64,000 nt of DNA from Cyanophora paradoxa CCMP329 (lineage: Eukaryota; Plantae; Glaucophyta). Of the stretch, positions 21,701 through 35,409 are shown in pieces; the first letter of the stretch is position 1; each line of letters begins with the position of its first letter. Location: assembly GCA_004431415.1 (NCBI GenBank), contig QPMI01000129.1:186001-250000 (forward strand). Direction: 5' to 3'. The notes below the pieces were generated by a model. It made no database searches and had not been told where the DNA came from. It was given only the letters and a program-made list of their open reading frames with translations. Both the position numbers and the translations under genes were made by a program.

Positions 21701-23373
21701 TCAGAGGCGGGCGCGTTGCTGGAAGGCAGCGGTCATGATGGCGCCCTGGGTCATCCAGCAGCCGCCGTCGACGGGGAGGACGGCGCCGGTGACGTACGAG
21801 GCGCACTCCTCGGCGCAGAGGAAGAGCGCCGCCTGCTCCATCTCGTGGTTCGACGCCATCCGCTGCAGCGGGATCTGCCCATGCGCGCCCGCGCAGGCGT
21901 GCCGGGTGAGGCACACAGATCGAGGGGTGGTGCAGCGTCATACGAGCGCGCACCGACTTGGCGAGCTTGTCCTTGAAGGCGCCGGGGAGGAGCCGCCGGA
22001 AGCCCTCCGTGTCTGCCGGAGGGGGGAAAGGCGTGGGCCGGGGAGCGAGAGAGGGGGCGGGAGAGAGCGAGGGGCGGGCGCACCCTCGACTGGCCCGGGC
22101 CCGAGGGCGTTGACGCGGATGTTCTTGGGGCCCCACTCGACGGCCAGGTGCCTGCGCAGGGGATGAGGTGTACAGGCAGATTTGGAGCCCCGCAGGGGTG
22201 GAGCGGCGGCACCGGGTCATGGCGTCCACGGCGGCCTTGGCGGAGCCGGCGTGGACCTGCAGCGGGCTCGCGTTGTAGTGCAGCGTCATGCTGCGCCCCG
22301 CCCATTTGAGGCCGCCGAGAGCTGCATGCAGGTGCAGACGCGCGGAATCGGGACGGGTACCTGATGTTCAAGATGACGCCGCCGTGCTCGCCCATCCTGG
22401 TCAGGTGTCATCTGAAGAAATCTCGAGCGCAAGCGGAGGCCGGGCCGCACCAGGCGTGGTAGGCGGCCTTGGAGGCGTTGAAGGTCCCGATCGTGTCGAT
22501 CTCGACCACCGTCTTGAACGCGTTGTACGAGAGACGCTCCGCCTGCGCGCGCCGGCGACCCGCCCCGTCGATCGGCCGCCCAGTGGCGCGGCGCGGCGCG
22601 TCGGGGGCGAAGAGGGGGGCGGACCGCCGCCAGGAAGTTGCCGGCCGCCCCTGCACGTCGTGCCTCGTCAGCCGCCGGGCGCGCGGCGCGGCGGAAACAG
22701 AGCGCACCGTTGACGAGGATGTCCAGAGAGCCGAGCTCGTTGACGCAGGCCTTGCACGCCTTCTCGATCTGCGGCCGGCGGCGCTCGAGCGCACGAGGGG
22801 CTGGCGCGCGGGGCGCGGGGCAGGGCGGCACGCCTGCTCGGGGCTGCGGACGTCCGCAGCGAAAGACTTGACCACGCTGCCGGTTGCGAAGCTCATCTCC
22901 TCCGCCGCCTTCTTCAGCTTCTCGCCGCTCCGCGAGACAATCATCACCCGCGCGCCGTGCCGCGCGAACGCCTCGGCGATCCCTCGGCAGATGCCTGCGC
23001 GGCGCACGTTCAGAGCGCTGGAAACGCCGAACGAAGCGCACGGCAGCGGCGGTCACCGGAGCCGCCTCCCGTCACCAGAGCGACCTGGCCGGCAAGGAGG
23101 TCCTGTCGGAAGGCGCTACGCTTCGGGGCCGGCCGCGGCACGACGGCTCGAGGACCCTGCGTAACGTTCTGCGTAGGCGCGCGGCGAGGGCGTCAGCGAG
23201 CGCTTGCAAAACCGGTGCATCGCGCAGTTACGTACGCTGGGCCCCGCAGCGGAGGGGCGGGGGAGCGAGCCCTTGTTGAACAGCGGGTGGATCTTCGCCA
23301 CCAGATCCGCGTACGCGTGCGCCGCCTGCTCCTTGGTCAAGCCGCCTTTTGCCGAGGCCACGGGTTCCGTCAT
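21701..23373 (-). CDS. DECR2: Peroxisomal 2,4-dienoyl-CoA reductase (SDR) with residual ACBP C-terminal helix
   Basis: [25 protein letters not shown]..|[20 protein letters not shown]|[44 protein letters not shown]; C-terminal ARL* is a PTS1. Confidence 0.9.
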
Positions 23374-23930
23374 CTCGTAGAGGGCGGATTCACGTGAACT
23401 GTACATGTGGCGTTCTCGATGGCCAGGACCCCCGCCTAGCTATAGGCTAGTCGAATTCACGTGAACTGCGGCGTTTTATATCTCGAAAAGCAGTACAAAC
23501 GACGGCAGCCGAGTCGAATTCACGTGGCGTTCTCGAAAAGCAGAAAGCGAGGGCTAGGGGGGTACTCGGCCTGGCAGTACGGGTACTTGATCATGACTAG
23601 TACTCGCACGGCATACTCGACATGCATAAGGAGCCGAATCGCACGGAGCGCCGCGAACGAACGAATGTACTGGCGCGAGCCGCGGTCACGGTACTGGCCA
23701 ATGGCCATTTCAAGTTTCCGGCTTTAACTGTGAACCGAGAAGTCGGATCGGAGCGCTTAGAGCCTTCGAAACTTGCCAAGTTGCATGTTGAAATTCACGT
23801 GAGCCGCAAATCAACGTTCACGTGAACGTTAACGTGAACTGAGACGTCGACGCGCTTTTCACGTGAACGCGTACGTATACGTGAACTGAGACGTCGATCG
23901 CGACGCGCTTAGACTATGTATATAGCTAGC

Positions 23931-24014
23931 ACAGCGGTACGCGTTTGTATACCTCTGCGATCGCCAAATATTATTCTTCCAAGTCTATGGGCCCATACAA
24001 ACGCGTACCGCTGT
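23931..24014. repeat. Perfect 20-bp inverted repeat (mini-MITE or hairpin)
   Basis: ACAGCGGTACGCGTTTGTAT (23931-23950) / ATACAAACGCGTACCGCTGT (23995-24014); no TSD found. Confidence 0.8.
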
Positions 24015-24422
24015 CACGGCGCTGTGTAGCTCGTGCATATGATCATGATCACGTGAACGTGAACTGATCATGAGACGTCGACGTCGACGCTGGACGCACT
24101 AGCGCTTAAGCTTAGACGAACCTGCCCGTCTGCCTCATGATCATGATCATGAGCATGTGTCATGATCGATATCAGCGGACTCACGTGCACCCGGACGCGG
24201 CCCTGGCAGCTGCATGCGCAGACGTCGACGTCGACGTCGTCCCGGGTCCACAACCCGTGCCGCCCCGGGCGGGCGGAGGAGCGGGGAGGCCCGTCGACGT
24301 CAATGCATATGCGAGCCTCCAGCAGCGCGCGCTAGCAGCAGCTGCAGCATATGCATGGACTCCGGGACCGCCGCAAGCTAAGGTCAAGCTCGAGCACGGC
24401 CGGCGCCGGGCTGGACGTCGAC

Positions 24423-26873
24423 ACGACGGCGTCAACAAGAGGGCGCAAGCAGACCCACACGGGCCCGACCCTGGCGTACTTTGACCCCGGCCTGCTGGAC
24501 GAGTGGAAGCGCCAGCAGCTGCTCCTCCTCGCCCGAGTGAAAGCAGTCCAAGACGGAGATGAGCGGTTCCTCCGCCGCGCCCTACTCCCGGAGGCGGAGG
24601 CGGCGCTGCAAACAGCGCTCGAGATGGCGTTGGCGGCGGAGCCGAGGGCCGAACCGCTGGATGAAGCACCGCCCGTCTCAAACCCCCGCGAACTGAGAGA
24701 TCTGTATCAGGCGAGCTTCGGGCCTGAGACGTGGAGCGAGCAGGACGGCCAGTACTGGCAGCACGCACTCGCGCTCTGGGAGACGATCGAGAAGTACGAG
24801 CTCGAGAAGCACGGCAACGCGCATCCGAGGTTACTGAACATATGGACGGACGGGAGCCTATTCAAGGGTCAGACGGAAGGCGCGCACGCGGGCTACGGCG
24901 TGGTGGTACCTGCGACCGCTGCGGACGGCGAGCGGCTGAACCCGGACGAGGCTGCGACCGAATGCCTCGGCCGGCTTCGAGGGCTCCAGGAGATCAATAA
25001 AGCTGAACTCCAAGCGGCGATCGTGGCAGACGTACTCGCACCAAACGGGATGCGCCTGCACACGGACAGTCAGAACGTCTGCACGTGGTACCAGAAGTTC
25101 GTGCGGAACGCACACCAGCAGCACGCGCGCGACTATGTCAGACACCCCTGCAATGCAGAGCTGTATGCCTGGTCGCGCTTCCGAGCCCTGCTGCAGCAAC
25201 GAGAACACCGAAGAGCGGTGGCGCTCGTCAAGGTCAAAGCCCATAGCAAGAGGGAACCCCTCCATGAACTAAACGATGCGGCTGACAAGGCGGCCAAACG
25301 GGCGGCCAAGCTCGAGCCGCAGCCGCCAAACACGCTGACAGAGGACATCTTCCTCCCGCCCGCGTTCAGCATGCCGGCGGTGCTGACGATCCAAGGGCCA
25401 GACAGGATAGTGCGGCGGGTCGAAGGAGATCCCCGGCGGCATGCTGCTGTGCTGCACGCGCACCACACGCACTTCGCCTGGGAGAACCAGCTGAACGCGG
25501 GGGAATGGCTGCGAGCGCCGGTGGACCACGGCGCAGTGTACGATCAGATGGCAATGGGACCCCGCCGCGTCGGTGTGAGCCAAGAGAGCAACTGCTTCAG
25601 GGGTACTCACGCGAAGCTCGTGCTGGGTACGGTGGCTACAGCCTCGGTCCGCAAACGCGACGCGCCGGAGCTCTACAGTGAGATAAACCCCGGCGGGTTC
25701 TGCGCCCTCTGCAGCGTACGCCAGACAGATAACGAGGGCCGGCCCCGACTCGTTGCTGGCCCCGTGGAGACGCTCGAACACGTCCTCTCCTGCCCCAGCG
25801 CGCCAGCGGTAACGGCACGCGCGGAAGCAGAAGCCAAAATAGCAGAGGTAGTCGCCAGCGAGCTACCGGAGGCACTCAAGCGGTCGGTACCGCAGGCGCT
25901 TGCTACGTCTCTGAAGGTCACGCGCGTGGCTGACCCGACCCTCACACAGGCAGAGAGACAAACTCAGCTTTGGGTGCTGCGCGGGCTGCCACCAGCCGGC
26001 CTCACTGATCTGATTCGCGAGATCTAGACCGTCGAGGACGAGGTCCAGGCGGGCAAGATCGCCCGCAAGCTAACGAAAGCGATCGGTGAACAGGCGCACA
26101 AAACCTGGGCAGCACGATGCAAAGCGTACGCGGACTGGGAGAAGGAGTGCGGGATCACGAAGATGATGAAAGAGCGACGCGCGAAGCCCCCACGCGCCGA
26201 GCCGCGCCCCCGAGAGACGGCCGCGAAACCTGGCGGGCACCGACGCAAGCGCAGGAAACTCGCAATCGACGAGCCGGTACAGCCGCGCGTGAGTGCCATG
26301 CGCTTATGTCCAGGCACCGGGGTGGGGACGCCCTGGCCCTATCCTCACTGAGCTGCCCCCCAGACGATCACGGCTGGGTCCGGGCGGCGGAGGCAATGCA
26401 GGTGTACGACCACACCAACAGGTATGCATGGGGCGTGGGGACAGCAAGGACCAGACCACGTTAAACGCTGAGAGGGGGTGCTTTCTGGGGGGGGGCTTGG
26501 GGGGCACGGCGGGGACAACAACACGAGGAGGACGCAAACAGTGGAGCGGGAGCCAGTAGCCCACTAAACAGGGGCTGGCCAGCAACTTTTCTCTTTCACA
26601 CCTTTTCTTTCTCTAGCTGCGGCATGCTACGAGGATGGAGTAGGGCATTGCCGATAGAGATTAGGATCTTTGGACATTTAATTAGGCTTCCGTAGGACTT
26701 AGAAATGCAGCAAAGTAGACGTCACAGGAAAAGTAGAAACGCAGTTGTACTTAGAATGTTTAGGCACAGCACGCGAGAGTCCTCATATTCTCTTCCTGGA
26801 TACTGTTTTCAGTGAGGGTATGGTCGACGTTACGACTTCATTGTTGTATGGATGTGCTAATGCAAATCGACTA
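24423..26873 (+). mobile_element. 5'-truncated non-LTR retrotransposon (RNase H + C-terminal zinc finger), defective
   Basis: Intronless ORF: IWTDGS, NKAELQA, LHTDSQ, KVKAHS..NDAADKAAK, CALC..ETLEHVLSCP; in-frame TAG at 26025-26027; 19-bp TSD CGCCGGGCTGGACGTCGAC at 24404-24422 and 26874-26892. Confidence 0.92.
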
Positions 26874-27084
26874 CGCCGGGCTGGACGTCGACCCCGGTCC
26901 AGCGCTAGCGGATGACCGACGACGACCGTCGGACGAGTGGGATTATATTAGACTGAGATATAGATCTAGGGGATAGCTGCAGAGCTCGACACCGCTCAGG
27001 CGAGAGTGGGGTACGCCTGAGGGAGTCGCAGCTGCGGTGGGTGCGGAGCGAGGGGGGGGCGTTCGAGCGAGAGTGGGGTACGCC

Positions 27085-27769
27085 CAGTGTTGTCATCATG
27101 ATGCACACGGCCGTCCAGGCATCATGATGCGTCAATTATGATCCATCATGATCGATCATGACGTCTTCCCGCGGTCAGAATCGTTTCCCAGGGCATTTCC
27201 CACTCCTATTTCGCTGCGCGGGCTCTCTGCTGCGTTTCTAATGCATCGCGACGTGTTTAAGACTCATTTCTGACCAGTCTGGATAGATATTGGGCCCAGG
27301 GTTGGCCTGAAAGAGGTCCACACCCCCCTCTTCCCAAGATTTTTGAGGCAGAGGAGTGGTTGATCAACCTCCTTCAATGTCAAGATGGTGTGTTATGTGT
27401 TTTAAAAGCTGTGTTAAGCGTCTCCGCACCCATTCTCAAAGTGCGAATCGGTGCGATCTTGCATCGCCAGTGGCAAAGGGTGGTGCCCCCTGTACCCCCC
27501 ACGGCAACACAGCAGCCTTTCAGCATCGTCAGAATCGCTCCAAACCTCCTCTGACTAGCATATACGGTGTCGTTAAGTTGTTTAGATCGCATAAGAGGTC
27601 GTTAAAACAGCGCAGGCGACCAGAAATTAAACACGAGATTTGTGCACTGTACAGGTACCCCCCCTCACATCATGATGACGATCATCATAATCCGAGGTCA
27701 TCATGATGCGTTAATGACGTCTCATCATGATGGCGTCATCATGATGTGTGCATCATGATGACAGCACTG
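27085..27769. mobile_element. hAT-type MITE (685 bp)
   Basis: 24-bp TIR CAGTGTTGTCATCATGATGCACAC / GTGTGCATCATGATGACAGCACTG (1 mismatch); 8-bp TSD GGTACGCC at 27077-27084 and 27770-27777; an empty-site-like copy lies at 27000-27029. Confidence 0.92.
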
Positions 27770-28100
27770 GGTACGCCTGAGGGAGTCGCGGCCACGATCG
27801 GTATCGGCCGCGTCGCAACCGCGACGAACCTCGCGAGGGGTACCCGCGGAGGCATTCCACTTGGCACTGTGATCGACGCCTTTTGTCACTTGCATCCCGG
27901 GTGTGCGTTCGGGCGCGGCGCCTTGTTGCGCCGCGTTCATCACGGCTCTCTTCGCACCGCCGCCTCCGCGCGCGGTCCACCGGGATTCTCCCCCTGATTC
28001 CGCCCGGCGCACCGCCGCGCCTCGCGCGCGTTGCGACATTTTTATCTCTTCGGGTCCCCCGCGTCGCCCGTGACACCAGCGCGCGGCGCGCGGCGCGGGG

Positions 28101-29310
28101 ATGGGGCGCGGCCGCGGGCTCTGCCCCGTCTGTCTGCGCGCCCACGCGCCCGTCGACATGATCGGATGCGACAGGTGTGACGCATGGGTGCACTACAGGT
28201 GCGCGCGCCGCGCCCGCTTGTCGTCTGTTCTGTTCCCTCTGTTCCGCCCGTGTGCTCTAATTTTCCGACTGTTCCGGCGCCCCCCCGCGCAGGTGCGCCG
28301 GCGTCCGCGACGACGCGCACGCGGGTTCAATCGATTATTTGTGTCCGGCGTGCGCCGCCGGCGCGCGGCCCGCTCAAGTAGGCCCTCTCCCGCCCCGGTT
28401 GCCCGTGCCTTGCTTACCGCCCGGCCCAGCACGCCGAGGCTGCGCAGCCGCCCGACGCCCCCGTCGCCGGCGCCGAGAGAAAACGTGCTCCGGATCGGGC
28501 GTCGGACGAGGGCAGCGGGAGCGACGGCGGCGGCGCGCGCCGACGCGGTCGGAAGAAGCGGCGTCCGGGCGGCGCCGGTGATACCGGGGTGCGCGCGCGG
28601 TGGAGCGCGCCCCGTACCGTTTCGTTTTCCGTGCTCGCTGGACGTCGACCCTTCTTTCCTCGCAGGCGCCGGCTTCGGGGACGGGACGAGGGGGTGGCGT
28701 CGGTCGCGGCCACGGTCGGGGCAAGCCCGACGCCCCCGTCGTCGGCGCAGAGAGGAAGCGCCCCGCCCCCTCCGTTGGCGGGGGCGTCGAGGCGGGCTCG
28801 GTGCGGGCTCTTGTGTACTCCCGTCTTTTCGGCGCACTGGCACCCCTGACGTTCGTCTGTCGCTGCTACGCCAGGGTCCGGAGAAGAGGGGGCGCGGTGG
28901 CGGGGGTGGGGGCGGCCGTGGTGGCGGCGGTCGGCCGTGTGGCGGCGGTCGGGCGCGTGGGGCGGCGGCGGGCGGCGAGGCGGCGGCGGTCGGGGCGGGC
29001 GGGGCGGCGGGGCGGCGGCGGCGGGGCGGCGGGCATGGGCCCCCTCTCGTCCGTCCCCCGCCGCCCACGGCGTGCGGTGGGTGCTCCGCGGCGCTCGGCG
29101 GCCGCAGCCTTGCCGCTCTTGCTGCGGCGGGCGACATCGTGCGCTGCGCGAATCCGGCGTGCGGGGCCGCCTACCACGCCCCGTGCCGCGACACCTTCGA
29201 TGCCGGGCGCCTCGCGGGCGTCTTCGAGGCGGCGTCCCCGTCGCCGGGGTCCCGGGTCTCTCTACGGCGCCAAGTGGACATTCGAGGGCAGGATGTGCGT
29301 CGTGTTCTCG

Positions 29311-29341
<31 letters not shown>

Positions 29342-32300
29342 TGATCGTTTGCCGTTTGCGCAGTTCGAGACCCCCGCGGACTGCCCGTCCCCGTTCGCTG
29401 CCGGCAAGCGCGCCGACCGGCTGCGCCTCGCCCTGCACGGCGACGGGGCGCCCGCCAACTTCGGGCGGGCCGCCTACCGCCCCGAGCCCTACTTCGCGGG
29501 GCTCTTCGGGGCTGGTGGGGGGGGCTGGTCGCCCCCCGCCGACCTCGAGGCCGCCGGGGTGCGCCGTCGCCGCCGCCCCCCTCTTCCGCTCCGCCCCATC
29601 TCACCCGGCACCCTCCCGCCCCCGACAGAAGCGGGTGCGGGAGTGCCTCGATGCCGAGGCCGCGCTGGCGGCAGGGCGTGCAGAGGAGGAGGCGGTGGCG
29701 GCGGCGATGCGGGCGGCGGCAAGGCGGAAGGAGGGGAGGGAGCAGCTGCTCCGGGACCTGCGCCGTCGGCGGCCGCCGCGCGACCCCCCGGCGCTCGGCA
29801 GGTACAAGGGCGTCCGGCGCTGCATCGAGGTCAGGGACGTGTACTCGTGGGTCGCCGTGCACGAGTTCGCCGGCGTCAGGGTACCGTCGCTTCCCCCCCC
29901 CCCCCCCCCCCATCCCCGGGCCCGGTCGACGACCCCCGGGCTAACCCCCGCCCCCCTCAGGTGCACGTTGGCGTCTACGGTGCGCCGAAAAGCGCGGCCG
30001 AGGCCCACGACCGTGTGGCCATCGCCCTGCGCGGGCCCGACCGCGCGGCCGGCCGCACCAACTCGTCGCCCCCGGACCGCCCCGGGGAGCCCTTCTTCCG
30101 GCGGCTCCTGGGCTCGCGCCCCCCCGCCATCGGCTTCCGCGACCCCGTCCTCGCCGCGGCGGCGGCGGAGGGTCCCGTCGCCACCGTGGACGTGGCGCTC
30201 TGCCGCACGTGCGGCGCGTCGTTCCGGGGGCGCGACGCCCTCGCCAGGCTCGCCGAGCACGAGCTCCGTGCCCGCAGGACGTGGCTCGACGGCAGGGATG
30301 TGGTCGAACGCCAGGCCCACCTGCGCGTGCATCCCGCCGCGGTCCCTGCCGTGCCTCCTTCTGCCGGCGCGGCGCAGGCCGACGGCCCCTCCGAGGACGT
30401 TGTGGTGCGCCATGCCCTCCCCCCCGATGACTCCTCGTCCGTGACCGCTCGTCCCCCAGGGCGCGGTCCTACGGACCGTTGGCGCGCTCCTCGACGCCAA
30501 GGGGGCCGGCGGCGGGCCCCCTGGCTGCTGGTACTGCCCGCGCTGCCGGTTCACCGTCGGTGCGGGGGCCATCGCCGTGCGCATGGGCAGCAGGTTCAAA
30601 CAGTGCGTAGCGCCCTGTCGCGTCTTCTTCCTCGCGCGCACTGCGGCAGCGCGCTCACCTTTGCTGCCGTGTAGGGTGCTAGGCGCGAGTGACCTGCTGC
30701 CCCACCTGCTGGAGGTGGCGGGGCGCACGGGCTACTTCTGGAGGCAGTTCGACGCCGCGAAGCCGGGCATCCTGAAGTTCTACAACGGGCGGGCGGGCGA
30801 AGCGAGCAAGCGGGTGCATGCCCGCCCTCGCCGTCGGTCCCAGTTCCGGCTTGACGCGGTAGCCCCGTCGTCGCAGACCTGCGTCCCCGTGAAGGGCAGG
30901 GCCAAGGACACCAAGGGGACCAAGGAGATCGAACCCGATAAGTGGGGGCGCTTCCCGTGGGGGCGCTCCGCCAGGCGCCTCTTCGGCGATGGGCGGCGGG
31001 ACGGCTTCGTGGCGTCGCTGGCGGGCTGTGGGCCGTCGGACGGCTCCCCGGGCGGCAGCCTCGCCGACCTCCGGCGAGCGAGTGCGACCGTACCCCCTGC
31101 CCCCTGGGGTACGTCGGCGCCCTCCGACGCTCCCCTCAGTTGAGGAGGACGACGCGGTGGAGCTGGCCAAGGAGCGGGAGCGGGCGGCGGAGGCGGCGGC
31201 GGCGGTGGTTGTGCTCGGGGTTCCGGGCAGGATCGCGCTCCGTGCCGCGATCGACCGGCACCCGGACTTCGTCGGCCGGCGGCGGGAGGGGCTCCTTGGT
31301 ACCGTCAAGGGCGGCAAACGCAGGGCCCTCCACCAGCTCGGTGTCGGGCGCCTCCTCGAGGTCGCGGCCGAGCTCGGCGTCGACACGGCCACCTACGCAG
31401 AGCCGTCGGCCGTGCCGGCGCCGGTGCCCGTGGCGGCGGCCCCGGCCCCGCGTCCGGTGACGCTCGTCCACCACGTGCACCACTCCGGCCTCCGTGGCGA
31501 GGGAATTGCCACGGTGCGGCGCGCCGCCATCGGGTGCTGCATCGCCTACAACGCGTGCAAGAACCTCCTGGCCCGCAACCCATGGGTCCGTGCGGGGGTT
31601 TTGTGCGGGCGCGCCGCGGGGCTGCGAACGTTAACTGCCGGCCGCAGATCTTGAAGAGGAAATCTGGCCGCGAGAAGATGCTGTACGCCGCCATCGTCGC
31701 ACGCGACCACCCTCGGCCCGCGCCGCGCGCGGCGCGGGCGCCGCGTGACTCGGCCCGGCGCACGCACGAGCCTCCAACGGAGGCGGCGGTCGGCGAGGGC
31801 GCGGAGGTGGTGGTCAGCGAGGGCGACGACGGGGAGCCGGAGAGCGACGAAGATCGTCCCGCAGCGCGCCCCCTTTCCCCCCTCCCCGCTCTCCCTTCTC
31901 GGTTGACCGTGGGCTCTTTTTTGCCGCTGCGGCAGAGAGAGGGGTGGGGCCACGAGCTCGCCTGCAGAGTGCGCGATGCCATGCTGGCGGAGATGCGGAC
32001 CCACCACGACGCGCATCTCTACCTCCTGGAGACCTCCACACATACGCTGGAGGGCGCGGTGCGCGATGCGCTTCGGGCGGTCGACCAGCAGGTCGAGCGG
32101 GGGGCCCCGCTGAGGAACATCCGGTACCCGTCCTCTCCCCCCCCCCCCAAGGGGCCGCCGAGGCGCCATCTGACCGCCCTCTCCAACCGCACAGGGACCG
32201 CAGCCTCCGGGGCGGGCAGGTCGCGATCGTCGTGGCCTCGCAAGACTACAACGCGGAGGCCGGCTTCTGGTCCTTCCTCCACGGCCTGCCGACGCACGTC

Positions 32301-34823
32301 GGTACGCTCCCGCTCCGGATCGATCACGACGCGCGGCTCGTCCTGGCGCAGCGGGGCCGGGTCCGGTGCGCGCGGGGGGTGTGGGCGCTCGGCTTGGCGG
32401 CCCCGCTGAGTGGGACTGGGCAGGCTGTGCGAGACCGTCGCAGCTGAGAGGGCGCGCGCCGTGACCACCCTGGGGCTGCACACCCCGGCGGACGAGAGGC
32501 CGCTGCGGGTGAGGGAGCTCCGCACCGCGATCACGCAGCACGCAGACTTCGTCGGTGAGCGTCGGAAGAAGCTTATGGGCAAGTACCACCCGTTCATCAA
32601 GCATGTCCCTGTGGAGCGCCTCCGGGAGATCGCGGAGGAGCTGGGGGTGGTGCAGCCGACGTCGGACGGCTCAGACGCCTTCAAGGGCTTCAGGGCCGCC
32701 CCGCCCCCGGCGCCCGCCCCACCGGAGGAGGGCTGGGACCGGTCCTTCCGCAGGGGCTACCACCGTCGCCCGTCGGGTTCGGCGGAGGCGGCGCTCGAGG
32801 CGTACCGTGCCGGCGATGCGAAGCGGCGCGAGGAGGCTGAGCGCGCGCGACTCGATGTCGAGCACGGTCGGCTCGACCCCGAGCGGCACAGGGTCGAGCA
32901 GGAGCGGCTCGATGTCGAACGGGGGCTCTACGGGCTCCTCGCGGACCTCGTCGAGGGCCGCGAGGCGTGGATCGCCCTCGACGGGGGGCTGCGGAAGTTC
33001 CTCACGGGCCTCTGCAGCGACGGGCACCTCTTCGAGGTGCGCGCCATTCTCTTTCTTAAGCCTGCGAGCGCCGATTCAATGGTTGTCTGTTTCAGTTCGG
33101 GAAGGGCCTGGGGCCCGAGCGGGATCACGTGCTGAAGAAGCTGGCGGAGCTCAAGGCCTTGTGCGAGCGGAAGGCTACGTGCGCTATATGCGCCTCGGTT
33201 GTGGTCACCACTCGCGTGCACTGACCGTTCGTGTGCCACGGTGTACAGTGACCCCGCGACGTCCTCGGGTGTCGCTGGTGGTGCTCCGCGTGCGGAGGGT
33301 GCGGAGGGCGCCCCGCGTACACGTACGATGTCCCTTGCCCCTTTTAACATCGGGGGTTAGGATTCTCTCTGATTCCATGCTTCACAGTGAACGCGCGCGC
33401 ACGGCGGAAGCTCCGGAAGAGGGTGCTCCGGGGGCACGAGCACGAGCGAAACGTGGGGACGGACATCCTCCGTCGCATTGCCGAGTACGTATACATGCAT
33501 ATATGTGGCCTCGACGGGTTCTCGTTTTCCTGATCTGTGCGCACCGGTACCCCCCAGCTTCCTCGTCGAGAACTTCACATACGTCATCTACTCGCCCCTG
33601 TGCACGAGCGAGATGGTCCGATCCGATGTGCGTACCCAGTGTGAGAGCGCACCCTGATCCCCCCTGGCCCGTCCTGCCTGCGCAGGTACGCCGCAAGGGG
33701 AGGGTGCTCGGGCCCGCGGCGGCGCGGCAGCTGCTCTACTGTCGCCACCACGAGTCGGCCCCCCCCCCCCCCCCGCCCCCCCCCCCCCCCCCCCCCCCCC
33801 CCCCGCCTTCTCGAGCTCCACGCGACAGATTCCCTCCTCTAGATCTTACGGACCCGCAGGTTCACCGAGATCCTGCAGGAGGCCGCCCTGCGCCGGAAGG
33901 GTTGCACCGTCCTCCTCGTCGACGAGCACTACACCACCAAGACGTGCAGCGAGTGTGGCTGTGTCAACTCGGAGGTTGGCTCGAGCGAGACCTTCCACTG
34001 TGTCAACCCCGGTTGCGGCGCGGTGATGGACCGGGACTTCAACGCCGCCCGGTGCGCGCCCTAGGTCTAGGTCTAGGTCTAGGGGTGTTCGCCGCGGGGC
34101 GCCGTGACGCAAAGCTAGAAATCTCACGTACCTAGAATTCACGTGAATTCGACTCTCAGACTTAGCTCCGACCCGCGCAACCAGAGTTCACGTGAATGCG
34201 TGCTCTCGAACCTAGCCCCGCGAGCGTTCACGTGAAGCTAGAGGGCTCAAAGCTAGAAACCTCGCGCAACCAGAGTTCACGTGAATGCGTGCACTCGAAC
34301 CTAGCCCCGCGAGCGTTCACGTGAAGCTAGAGGGCTCAAAGCTAGAAACCTCGCGCAACTAGAGTTAATGCGTGCTCTCGAACCTAGCCCCGCGAGCGTT
34401 CACGTGAAGCTAGAGGGCTCAAAGCTAGAAACCTCGCGCAACTAGAGTTCACGTGATCATGAATGCGTGCTCTCGAACCTAGCCCCGCGAGCGTTCACGT
34501 GAAGCTAGAGGGCTCAAAGCTAGAAACCTCGCGCAACTAGAGTTCACGTGAATGCGTGCTCTCGAAACTCAGCTCCGTCCCGCAGGAACATCTTCCTGCG
34601 GCTGGTCTCCGGCGTGGACGCGGGGCGCCGGCTGAAGCCCCTCCGATTGGCCGCCCTCGGCCTGGCGTCGCCGACGGCGGCCGAGTACGCCGCCGCCGCC
34701 GTGCGCGCGGCCACCGCCGCTGCTTCGGCCGGCGCTCCGGCTTCACACGACCCGGCCATGGCCGGCTGCAGCGCCCCCGACCCGGCCGCCCCCCGGCCGG
34801 CCGCATCCGTCGTCGATCAGTAG
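28101..34823 (+). CDS. Giant Fanzor2/TnpB-family RNA-guided nuclease fused to PHD x2, AP2-like x2 and zinc fingers (~1,596 aa, 22 exons)
   Basis: Manual GT-AG model, phases all compatible: 28101-28198, 28293-28377, 28430-28588, 28666-28800, 28875-29294, 29364-29558, 29629-29880, 29961-30404, 30460-30602, 30675-30813, 30877-31081, 31140-31585, 31648-32123, 32195-32365, 32424-33036, 33096-33178, 33249-33322, 33388-33484, 33558-33615, 33686-33753, 33860-34051, 34586-34823 (4,791 nt). Motifs: IAYNAC, LLETSTHTLEGAVRDA, IDHDARL, IALDGGLRKFLTG (D 32980), VIYSPL, VDEHYTTKTCSECG (E 33924), C..C, MDRDFNAAR|NIFL (D 34035). Confidence 0.85.
34174..34566. repeat. Intronic ~89-bp tandem repeat, ~4.4 copies
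   Basis: Unit CGCGCAACYAGAGTTCACGTGAATGCGTGCTCTCGAACCTAGCCCCGCGAGCGTTCACGTGAAGCTAGAGGGCTCAAAGCTAGAAACCT in intron 34052-34585. Confidence 0.95.
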
Positions 34824-35010
34824 GGGGACCGCTCACCCCCCGTCAGCGGGCTCTGCTGCGAAAAGCGTTTTACGCGACACCCGCGGCTTAGCGCCTTGTA
34901 GGAACAGCGCCCCTCTCCCTTCGGGGGGGGGGACCCAGTAGCTGCGCGCGACAAGTAGACCCGCGCTGCAGCTGTCCCTGTTTCCGTAGAGCCCTTTGCC
35001 TTCCACCAAT
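34824..35010 (+). ncRNA. Candidate Fanzor omegaRNA scaffold plus flank-derived guide
   Basis: Lies between the Fanzor stop and the return to host sequence; hairpins CCCCTCTCCC-TTCG-GGGGGGGGG (~34910-34932) and AGCTGCGCGCG..CGCGCTGCAGCT (~34940-34973). The position matches the known TnpB/Fanzor layout. No transcript evidence. Confidence 0.5.
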
Positions 35011-35241
35011 TATACCGCCCGATTTTGATGGGATCGTCGCTTGCGCTGGGAATCTTTGCATTCGAGCTCGCCGGGCCCACCTGTGAAGGATCGGGACGCG
35101 CGGCGAGCGGATCGGCGGGGTTCTGACCGTCGCCTGCTTGTAAAGAGCGTACAACTCCAGGCACGCGTCGTCGCTGACTTGCAGGCCCCGATCCAGCGCG
35201 TCCTTCAGCGCAGCAGCGGCAGAGGCCACGGGTTCCGTCAT
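34991..35241 (-). pseudogene. Orphaned 5' part of acyl-CoA-binding protein (ACBP) domain
   Basis: [38 protein letters not shown]|VGP..RYNWWKAKG with intron 35081-35127; homology stops at the insertion boundary. Confidence 0.8.
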
Positions 35242-35409
35242 CTCGTACGTATATACGCGTAGATCTAGAGGGCGCTGAAGTCAGCGACGCACTGTACCCT
35301 CGAGCCACTTCGCCCTCCCCCCCTCCCAAATTTGATCGCAGCAAGCGCACGGAGTTCTGCGGCCTGAAGCTTCAAATTTAGCGTTGCATTTAACGTTGCC
35401 GACCTCGCA

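Follow-up and report, generated by a model that had tools for sequence, protein, structure and literature searches.

The Fanzor elements of Chlamydomonas described by Bao and Jurka in 2013 are flanked by duplications of 7-19 bp, rarely of 44-443 bp; their 5' ends are clipped, and a short stretch of additional sequence follows the 5' duplication (PMC3627910). TnpB maintains IS605/IS607 elements by a cut-and-copy process (PMC10690162). Canonical IS607/Fanzor2 elements are without duplications. In the literature, we found neither a description of a natural Fanzor self-cleavage scar nor a paper on the Fanzors of Cyanophora.

The locus reported here belongs to the glaucophyte alga Cyanophora paradoxa, where an 11.6-kb Fanzor-bearing insert interrupts an ACBP-DECR2 fusion gene at the residues AKG. 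All positions refer to the window, that is, to the whole stretch of 64,000 nucleotides that was analyzed; they are collected in Table 1.

Table 1. Features of the locus and their positions in the window.
Feature	Position	Strand	Remarks
DECR2 (peroxisomal 2,4-dienoyl-CoA reductase) coding region	21701..23406	-	11 exons; 345 aa
First exon of the rescued transcript	23236..23563	-	starts inside the insert, crosses the three joints, ends at intron 23235-23169; 5' end is the contig end
ACBP helix-4 remnant fused to DECR2	23272..23353	-	helix 4 in register
Short direct repeat TTTGCC, left copy	23348..23353	+	6 nt exact; 10 nt with one mismatch from 23344
Exact 26-nt copy of 35222-35247	23354..23379	+	blastn E 8e-9 within the window
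7-nt copy (GAGGGCG) of 35268-35274	23380..23386	+	follows the 20-nt gap; 9 nt including the shared TA microhomology
Left part of the insert with TTCACGTGAA repeats	23387..23870		supplies the 5' leader of DECR2
Insert-derived in-frame AUG	23404..23406	-	precedes the copied ATG by 11 codons and is the first AUG in the major transcript
High-copy MITE-like element, nested	23931..24014		inverted repeats of about 20 bp
Nested RNase H retroelement fragment	24423..26873	+	Pfam RNase_H, E 2e-11
Fanzor gene, intron-containing	28101 (candidate start)..34823	+	Pfam Cas12f1-like_TNB, E 4e-16
Candidate omegaRNA scaffold and right end	34824..34994	+	closing stem 34848-34856 / 34986-34994; boundary predicted
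Orphaned ACBP 5' half	34991..35241	-	exon 1, 35241-35128; intron, 35127-35081; exon 2, 35080 to about 34995
Predicted guide	34995..35012	+	host flank, antisense to ACBP exon 2; only the first 6 nt match the left junction
Palindrome-rich 20-nt 5' leader piece missing from the left copy	35248..35267		in-frame stop for the 23406 AUG

Results

The split ACBP-DECR2 gene

The gene on the left of the insert is annotated (EukProt EP00741 tig00000498_g1645.t1). Its reductase domain was recognized by Pfam (adh_short_C2, E 1e-51) and its product ends in ARL, a PTS1-like C-terminus. The DECR2 exons were joined for comparison with P0001, and the matches obtained support the coding region. For ACBP, the pieces were searched exon by exon, each separately, and exon 1 of the orphan half matched the Pfam ACBP domain with an E value of 3.7e-5.

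The left piece and the right-hand read-through were scored separately against four ACBP domains. The piece past the left junction fits ACBP helix 4 (p 0.0005), but the right-hand read-through does not (p 0.39). The residues AKG, common to both sides, fall at an identical position of the ACBP profile on the left and on the right. Furthermore, the RNA-supported frame that leads from helix 4 into DECR2 is open, with 0 stops and no other early methionine, the next one being residue 112. The ACBP register of both halves, together with the in-frame passage from helix 4 to DECR2, indicates that the ancestral gene was an ACBP-DECR2 fusion, which was split at AKG. Two old ACBP paralogues in place of one split gene were considered and rejected, as the right-hand read-through misfits helix 4. 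A search for an intact fusion in relatives, which covered the best 120 homologues, the Atlas and the literature and is weakened by length limits, found none; the domain fusion may be lineage-specific. A candidate 51-nt GC-AG intron (34942-34992), antisense to the stem of the omegaRNA, is present on the minus strand directly after the AKG of the orphan ACBP half.

The left junction is a gapped copy of the right flank

The left junction consists of a collinear copy of the approximately 280 bp that lie beyond the right end of the insert, interrupted by two gaps of 221 and 20 nt. If the intact host sequence is written a-b-c-d-e-f-g, the present layout is a-b-d-f-(element)-b-c-d-e-f-g. The 10-mer at 23344-23353 is the same as that at 34991-35000 except for T23347 versus C34994 (9/10), and the upstream bases are CCGCCT. 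All the bases copied at 23354-23386 are identical to their source (33/33), and the 26-nt part of this copy carries the native ATG of the gene (23373-23371, minus strand) and 7 codons. The segment 35001-35221, absent on the left, is made of a 47-nt GT-AG intron (35127-35081) and of 174 nt (58 codons), so that the reading frame is kept.

The sequence-only reading had described this junction as a deleted duplicate of 34991-35274 which had lost the intron and 58 codons in frame. Sequence comparison confirmed all these coordinates and the composition of the gap; only the view of a single deletion has to be amended, as a second gap of 20 nt separates the 26-mer from GAGGGCG. Flanking anchors that match in register have a low probability of arising by chance: about 0.004 in the case of the 7-mer, about 0.001 for the 6-mer TTTGCC and 5e-5 for the 10-mer with its one mismatch. 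The three joints are located within 33 nt, the first being blunt and the two others showing 2-nt microhomology (TA and CG). Beyond GAGGGCG (past 23386/35274), no significant alignment was obtained, and the similarity was not above that of shuffled sequences. The possibilities that the gaps are introns or that they reflect a cDNA copy were rejected: their ends on the coding strand are TG..AA and TA..CG, and a one-base shift to GC..AG mismatches the observed bases.

The sequence-only reading had itself raised the objection of an assembly artefact. The left junction was checked in DNA runs and in contigs. All the sampled words from 21800-23700 (100%) were contained in 14 DNA runs, which come from the same organism and possibly from one strain, and one DNA contig covers 21650-23472, crossing the junction with 0 differences. 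DNA and RNA contigs from three studies traverse the left junction without differences, at a depth which corresponds to a single contig. The left junction is real, not an assembly error. The suspicion of an artefact or of collapsed haplotypes could be fed by the possible origin of the DNA runs from one strain, by the loss of rare variants in contigs and by read and contig support that covers the left junction, not the right one; against the agreement of the contigs and the 14 runs, we consider it extremely improbable.

Expression of DECR2 from the insert

In two studies, RNA contigs with a depth of about 140 extend unbroken from 23563 or 23472 over all the joints to 23236, with 0 differences, and the ten DECR2 introns were all seen in RNA contigs as GT/GC-AG joints. 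The rescued allele is spliced and transcribed across the junction. Since the RNA depth falls to 7-17 beyond 23563, the main transcript probably starts inside the insert.

The claim that the reductase keeps its ATG holds for the native ATG, which was copied (23373), but the first AUG of the transcript is the insert-derived one at 23406. It is the 20-nt gap that places this AUG in frame with DECR2; restoring the missing piece would turn it into a 9-codon upstream ORF. Each of the two gaps thus favours translation. Irrespective of how they arose, this points to selection for the reductase.

No contig joining the right ACBP half to the left half was seen among the RNA contigs. Splicing across the whole insert and the presence of an intact allele were rejected: among those listed, there is no loose end or joint at 23353, and the RNA and DNA depth there is that of one contig. 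Contigs drop rare forms, which bears on the absence of intact or intermediate alleles. A low-depth, spliced minus-strand RNA (23533-24480, three GT-AG introns) was also observed; it starts in or near the retroelement, overlaps the DECR2 leader and contains many upstream AUGs. The MITE-like element is mostly included in the intron 24008-23955 of this minor RNA.

Composition of the insert

In the window, TTCACGTGAA is present in 12 copies where 0 are expected, all of them inside 23389-34552. The sites are found near the left end and in the array of the last Fanzor intron, and a longer composite motif is spread likewise. Tied together by TTCACGTGAA and the composite motif, 23387-34994 would constitute one element. 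At the junction (23387, CG microhomology), its first repeat unit appears to be clipped.

Depth indicates that 23450-23995 is single-copy and that the sequence becomes multicopy from 24423, with the RNase H fragment, of which there are about 5-8 near-identical copies. This fragment contains an in-frame stop at 26025-26027 and is bracketed by a 19-bp direct repeat whose two copies (24404-24422 and 26874-26892) match perfectly. The segment 23391-23562 has one paralogous block elsewhere in the genome (depth about 98), which is present in an RNA run too and may be another left end. No transposase was found, and no serine recombinase TnpA among the ORFs scanned, which cover part of the spliced exons of the insert.

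Fanzor gene, candidate omegaRNA and predicted guide

The Fanzor gene is located at the right end of the element and its RuvC catalytic triad is intact (D at 32980, E at 33924 and D at 34035). Its last intron holds a repeat array (about 34110-34577), whose motif reappears at the left end of the element. Such a tandem array with a palindromic core is present in both Fanzor genes of the window (34110-34577 and 1500-2270); in each of them it occupies the last intron, by which the RuvC-III motif is split.

The 170 nt that follow the Fanzor stop fold better than shuffled sequences (z -2.6 and -3.0); the candidate omegaRNA scaffold gave no match in Rfam. According to the folding, the scaffold probably ends at 34994, in which case the guide would start at TTTGCC (34995) and the direct repeat would count 6 nt, beginning at the predicted right junction. 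Thus, the difference at 23347/34994, which had been taken for a synonymous mismatch near the TAM-proximal end, is likely to oppose element to host sequence and not to be a mutation, since the predicted stem closes at 34994.

If the scaffold ends at 34993-34994, as predicted, the match of the guide to the reconstructed intact site follows by construction. The expected cut site, at 15-21 nt, lies inside the 221-nt gap, and the match is destroyed by it, which is necessary but not sufficient for a cleavage scar. The proposal that the deletion begins 10 nt into the protospacer can be kept in the form of a gap starting 6-10 nt in, but this length is about that of ordinary Fanzor duplications (7-19 bp) and is not diagnostic of a second cut. 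The present allele is predicted to be immune, as had been proposed, matching the predicted guide over only 6-10 nt.

No second copy of the element was obtained; both ends are thus predicted, not deduced from a comparison of flanks. Other copies of the right end were sought and discarded, as the metagenome and viral pattern matches were due to chance and the viral Fanzor relatives are too distant; P0001 and the RNase H ORF led to no contigs either. The tail of the second Fanzor in the window was rejected as a guide to the boundary, the alignment not being significant. This remnant tail (2370-2620) shares a terminal TAGAGC preceded by a complementary GCTCT, an observation made post hoc which concerns only 2 of the 9 TAGAGC sites in the window.

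Discussion

Origin of the left junction

The reading to which we lean, with a confidence slightly below even, is that a single error-prone event of break repair gave rise to the left junction when the element inserted or re-inserted. The left broken end would have kept 6-10 nt of the target, equivalent to an ordinary short duplication, and would have been lengthened along the host strand past the right end, skipping ahead twice, first by 221 nt and then over the 20-nt hairpin, before being joined to a clipped left end of the element. The cell would then have kept a product that restored the reductase, the insert giving the promoter and the first AUG, the copied piece giving the native ATG and the gaps being in frame. 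Devoid of a full match to the predicted guide, such a product would be stable beside an intact Fanzor. Fanzor may also have caused the initial break, by cutting the empty site (cut-and-copy), and the chances that it cleaved at some step are about even. Because the copied bases are identical, the event would be young and no second step is needed. With a left part of the insert that is single-copy, there is no evident separate donor, and a donor at the same locus or cut-and-paste would fit.

This single repair event is in keeping with three joints crowded within 33 nt, with their TA and CG microhomology, with the hairpin in the 20-nt gap and with the apparently clipped first repeat unit, as well as with an RNA that traverses the junction and gaps that both favour translation. 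Chlamydomonas Fanzor elements bear a like signature (PMC3627910), and repair commonly yields templated inserts that were primed repeatedly from one flank (PMC5068794). However, priming takes place at 10 bp or less from the break in about 85% of polymerase-theta inserts (PMC5068794), and here the template would lie at a distance of 221-284 bp. Moreover, the pieces are collinear from the right junction of the element, as a long duplication would give, strong selection is required to reach the gene's own ATG in frame, and no second copy of the element was obtained by which its two ends could be set from their flanks.

The collinearity is what would be expected if, as the sequence-only reading supposed, a full duplication of about 280 bp had created an intact ACBP-DECR2 gene together with a perfect self-target, which Fanzor then cut and repair closed with the loss of 221 nt in frame. 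This sequence of events would account for the loss of a working ACBP domain, the catalytic residues of Fanzor are intact, and the gap extends in the direction opposite to the target motif, as would be expected of a nuclease which, like Cas12 enzymes, remains on the target-motif end. Duplications of 242 and 443 bp do exist for Fanzor elements (PMC3627910), and the gap takes out the expected cut site, ApmFNuc nicking at 15-21 (PMC10530073). Yet the reported Fanzor indels are of 2-35 bp (PMC10530073), a separate second gap of 20 nt is required 26 nt away, and the mismatch called in support is probably the border between element and host. Long duplications survive uncut in Chlamydomonas, no intermediate allele was found among the DNA or RNA contigs, and guide, target motif and activity are all predicted. 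We therefore regard a duplication cut afterwards as rather unlikely. The same doubtful standing is given to the wider proposal that the locus is a natural record of a Fanzor cutting the chromosome of its own host, in which the guide would have targeted the restored gene, and repair and selection would have left an immune, in-frame, expressed allele minus a domain. One repair event explains the junction as well as does a full duplication later cut by Fanzor, and by both routes the present allele would end up immune.

A long duplication at insertion might also have suffered two spontaneous deletions, kept as they were in frame, with Fanzor uninvolved. Spontaneous deletions with a median of about 225 bp arise in Chlamydomonas (PMC9977147), and the 20-nt gap, by removing the upstream ORF, is selectable by itself. 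But the 221-nt gap is blunt and starts at most 10 nt from the edge of the duplication, a small share of the open positions; the loss of ACBP brings no evident benefit and the undiverged copies leave little time, so that this course of events appears improbable. Slightly more improbable still is that the 11.6 kb are not one element and owe their layout to a rearrangement of unrelated origin or else to the RNase H retroelement, in the manner of the long duplications of Dualen. The insert is indeed a patchwork (single-copy left part, MITE, retroelement fragment) in which no transposase was found, and Dualen LINEs make duplications with a median of 900 bp (PMC9977147). Nevertheless, the retroelement fragment is nested and has its own 19-bp direct repeat, TTCACGTGAA and the longer composite motif are found only near the two ends of the insert, and the right junction coincides with the end of the predicted scaffold.

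Significance of the locus

What stands firm is that a Fanzor element has split a host gene, which is still expressed thanks to element sequence. The kind of junction has been known since 2013; here it is rebuilt from the gene's own start. The locus would link the variable duplications reported in 2013, and left unexplained, to guide-directed cutting. Should it be a self-cleavage scar, the genome would here provide direct evidence that host genes are reshaped when Fanzor targets its own locus, and that such self-targeting sets a limit to how long target duplications can be. It may be such a scar; this is a single locus for which ordinary repair offers an explanation, and sequence cannot prove the point. 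As one intact nuclease, a predicted guide, a reconstructed target and a predicted immune allele are brought together in a cultured alga, it provides a concrete test and is a good locus for testing native Fanzor activity, not yet evidence of such activity.

Comparison with known systems

Chlamydomonas reinhardtii Fanzor1 elements CRe-1, -2 and -3 share with the Cyanophora element an intact right end, an apparently clipped left end and a duplication that starts from the right junction (PMC3627910). In both cases, extra sequence follows the left duplicate, here the 33 nt at 23354-23386. However, CRe elements are Fanzor1 with Helitron2 ends and a TTTT target, whereas the present element has a Fanzor2-like look, a GC-rich target (upstream CCGCCT) and repeat arrays; it behaves like CRe and is not a member of the CRe family. 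In addition, the extra sequence is here a gapped copy of the local host flank that rebuilds an expressed gene, and no such rescue was described for CRe (PMC3627910).

The short insert, which would derive from a single flank by two rounds of copying primed by 1-2 nt, resembles the templated insertions of polymerase theta, but the latter use a template within about 10 bp, compared with 221-284 bp here (PMC5068794). As for IS605/IS607 TnpB, a guide from the right flank would cut the rejoined empty site and repair from a donor would restore the element (PMC10690162). In IS605/IS607, excision is scarless and repair exact, with no duplication; here a patchwork junction is observed, with no serine recombinase among the ORFs scanned. 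Likewise, IS607/Fanzor2 elements have no duplication and show matching dinucleotide cores at both ends, whereas a direct repeat and a patchwork left junction are found here.

Transposons are known to donate promoters and start codons to host genes, and in Cyanophora too the element gives the 5' leader and the first AUG. The difference is that the donated start rescues the very gene broken by the element, and a two-domain fusion is turned into a near single-domain enzyme.
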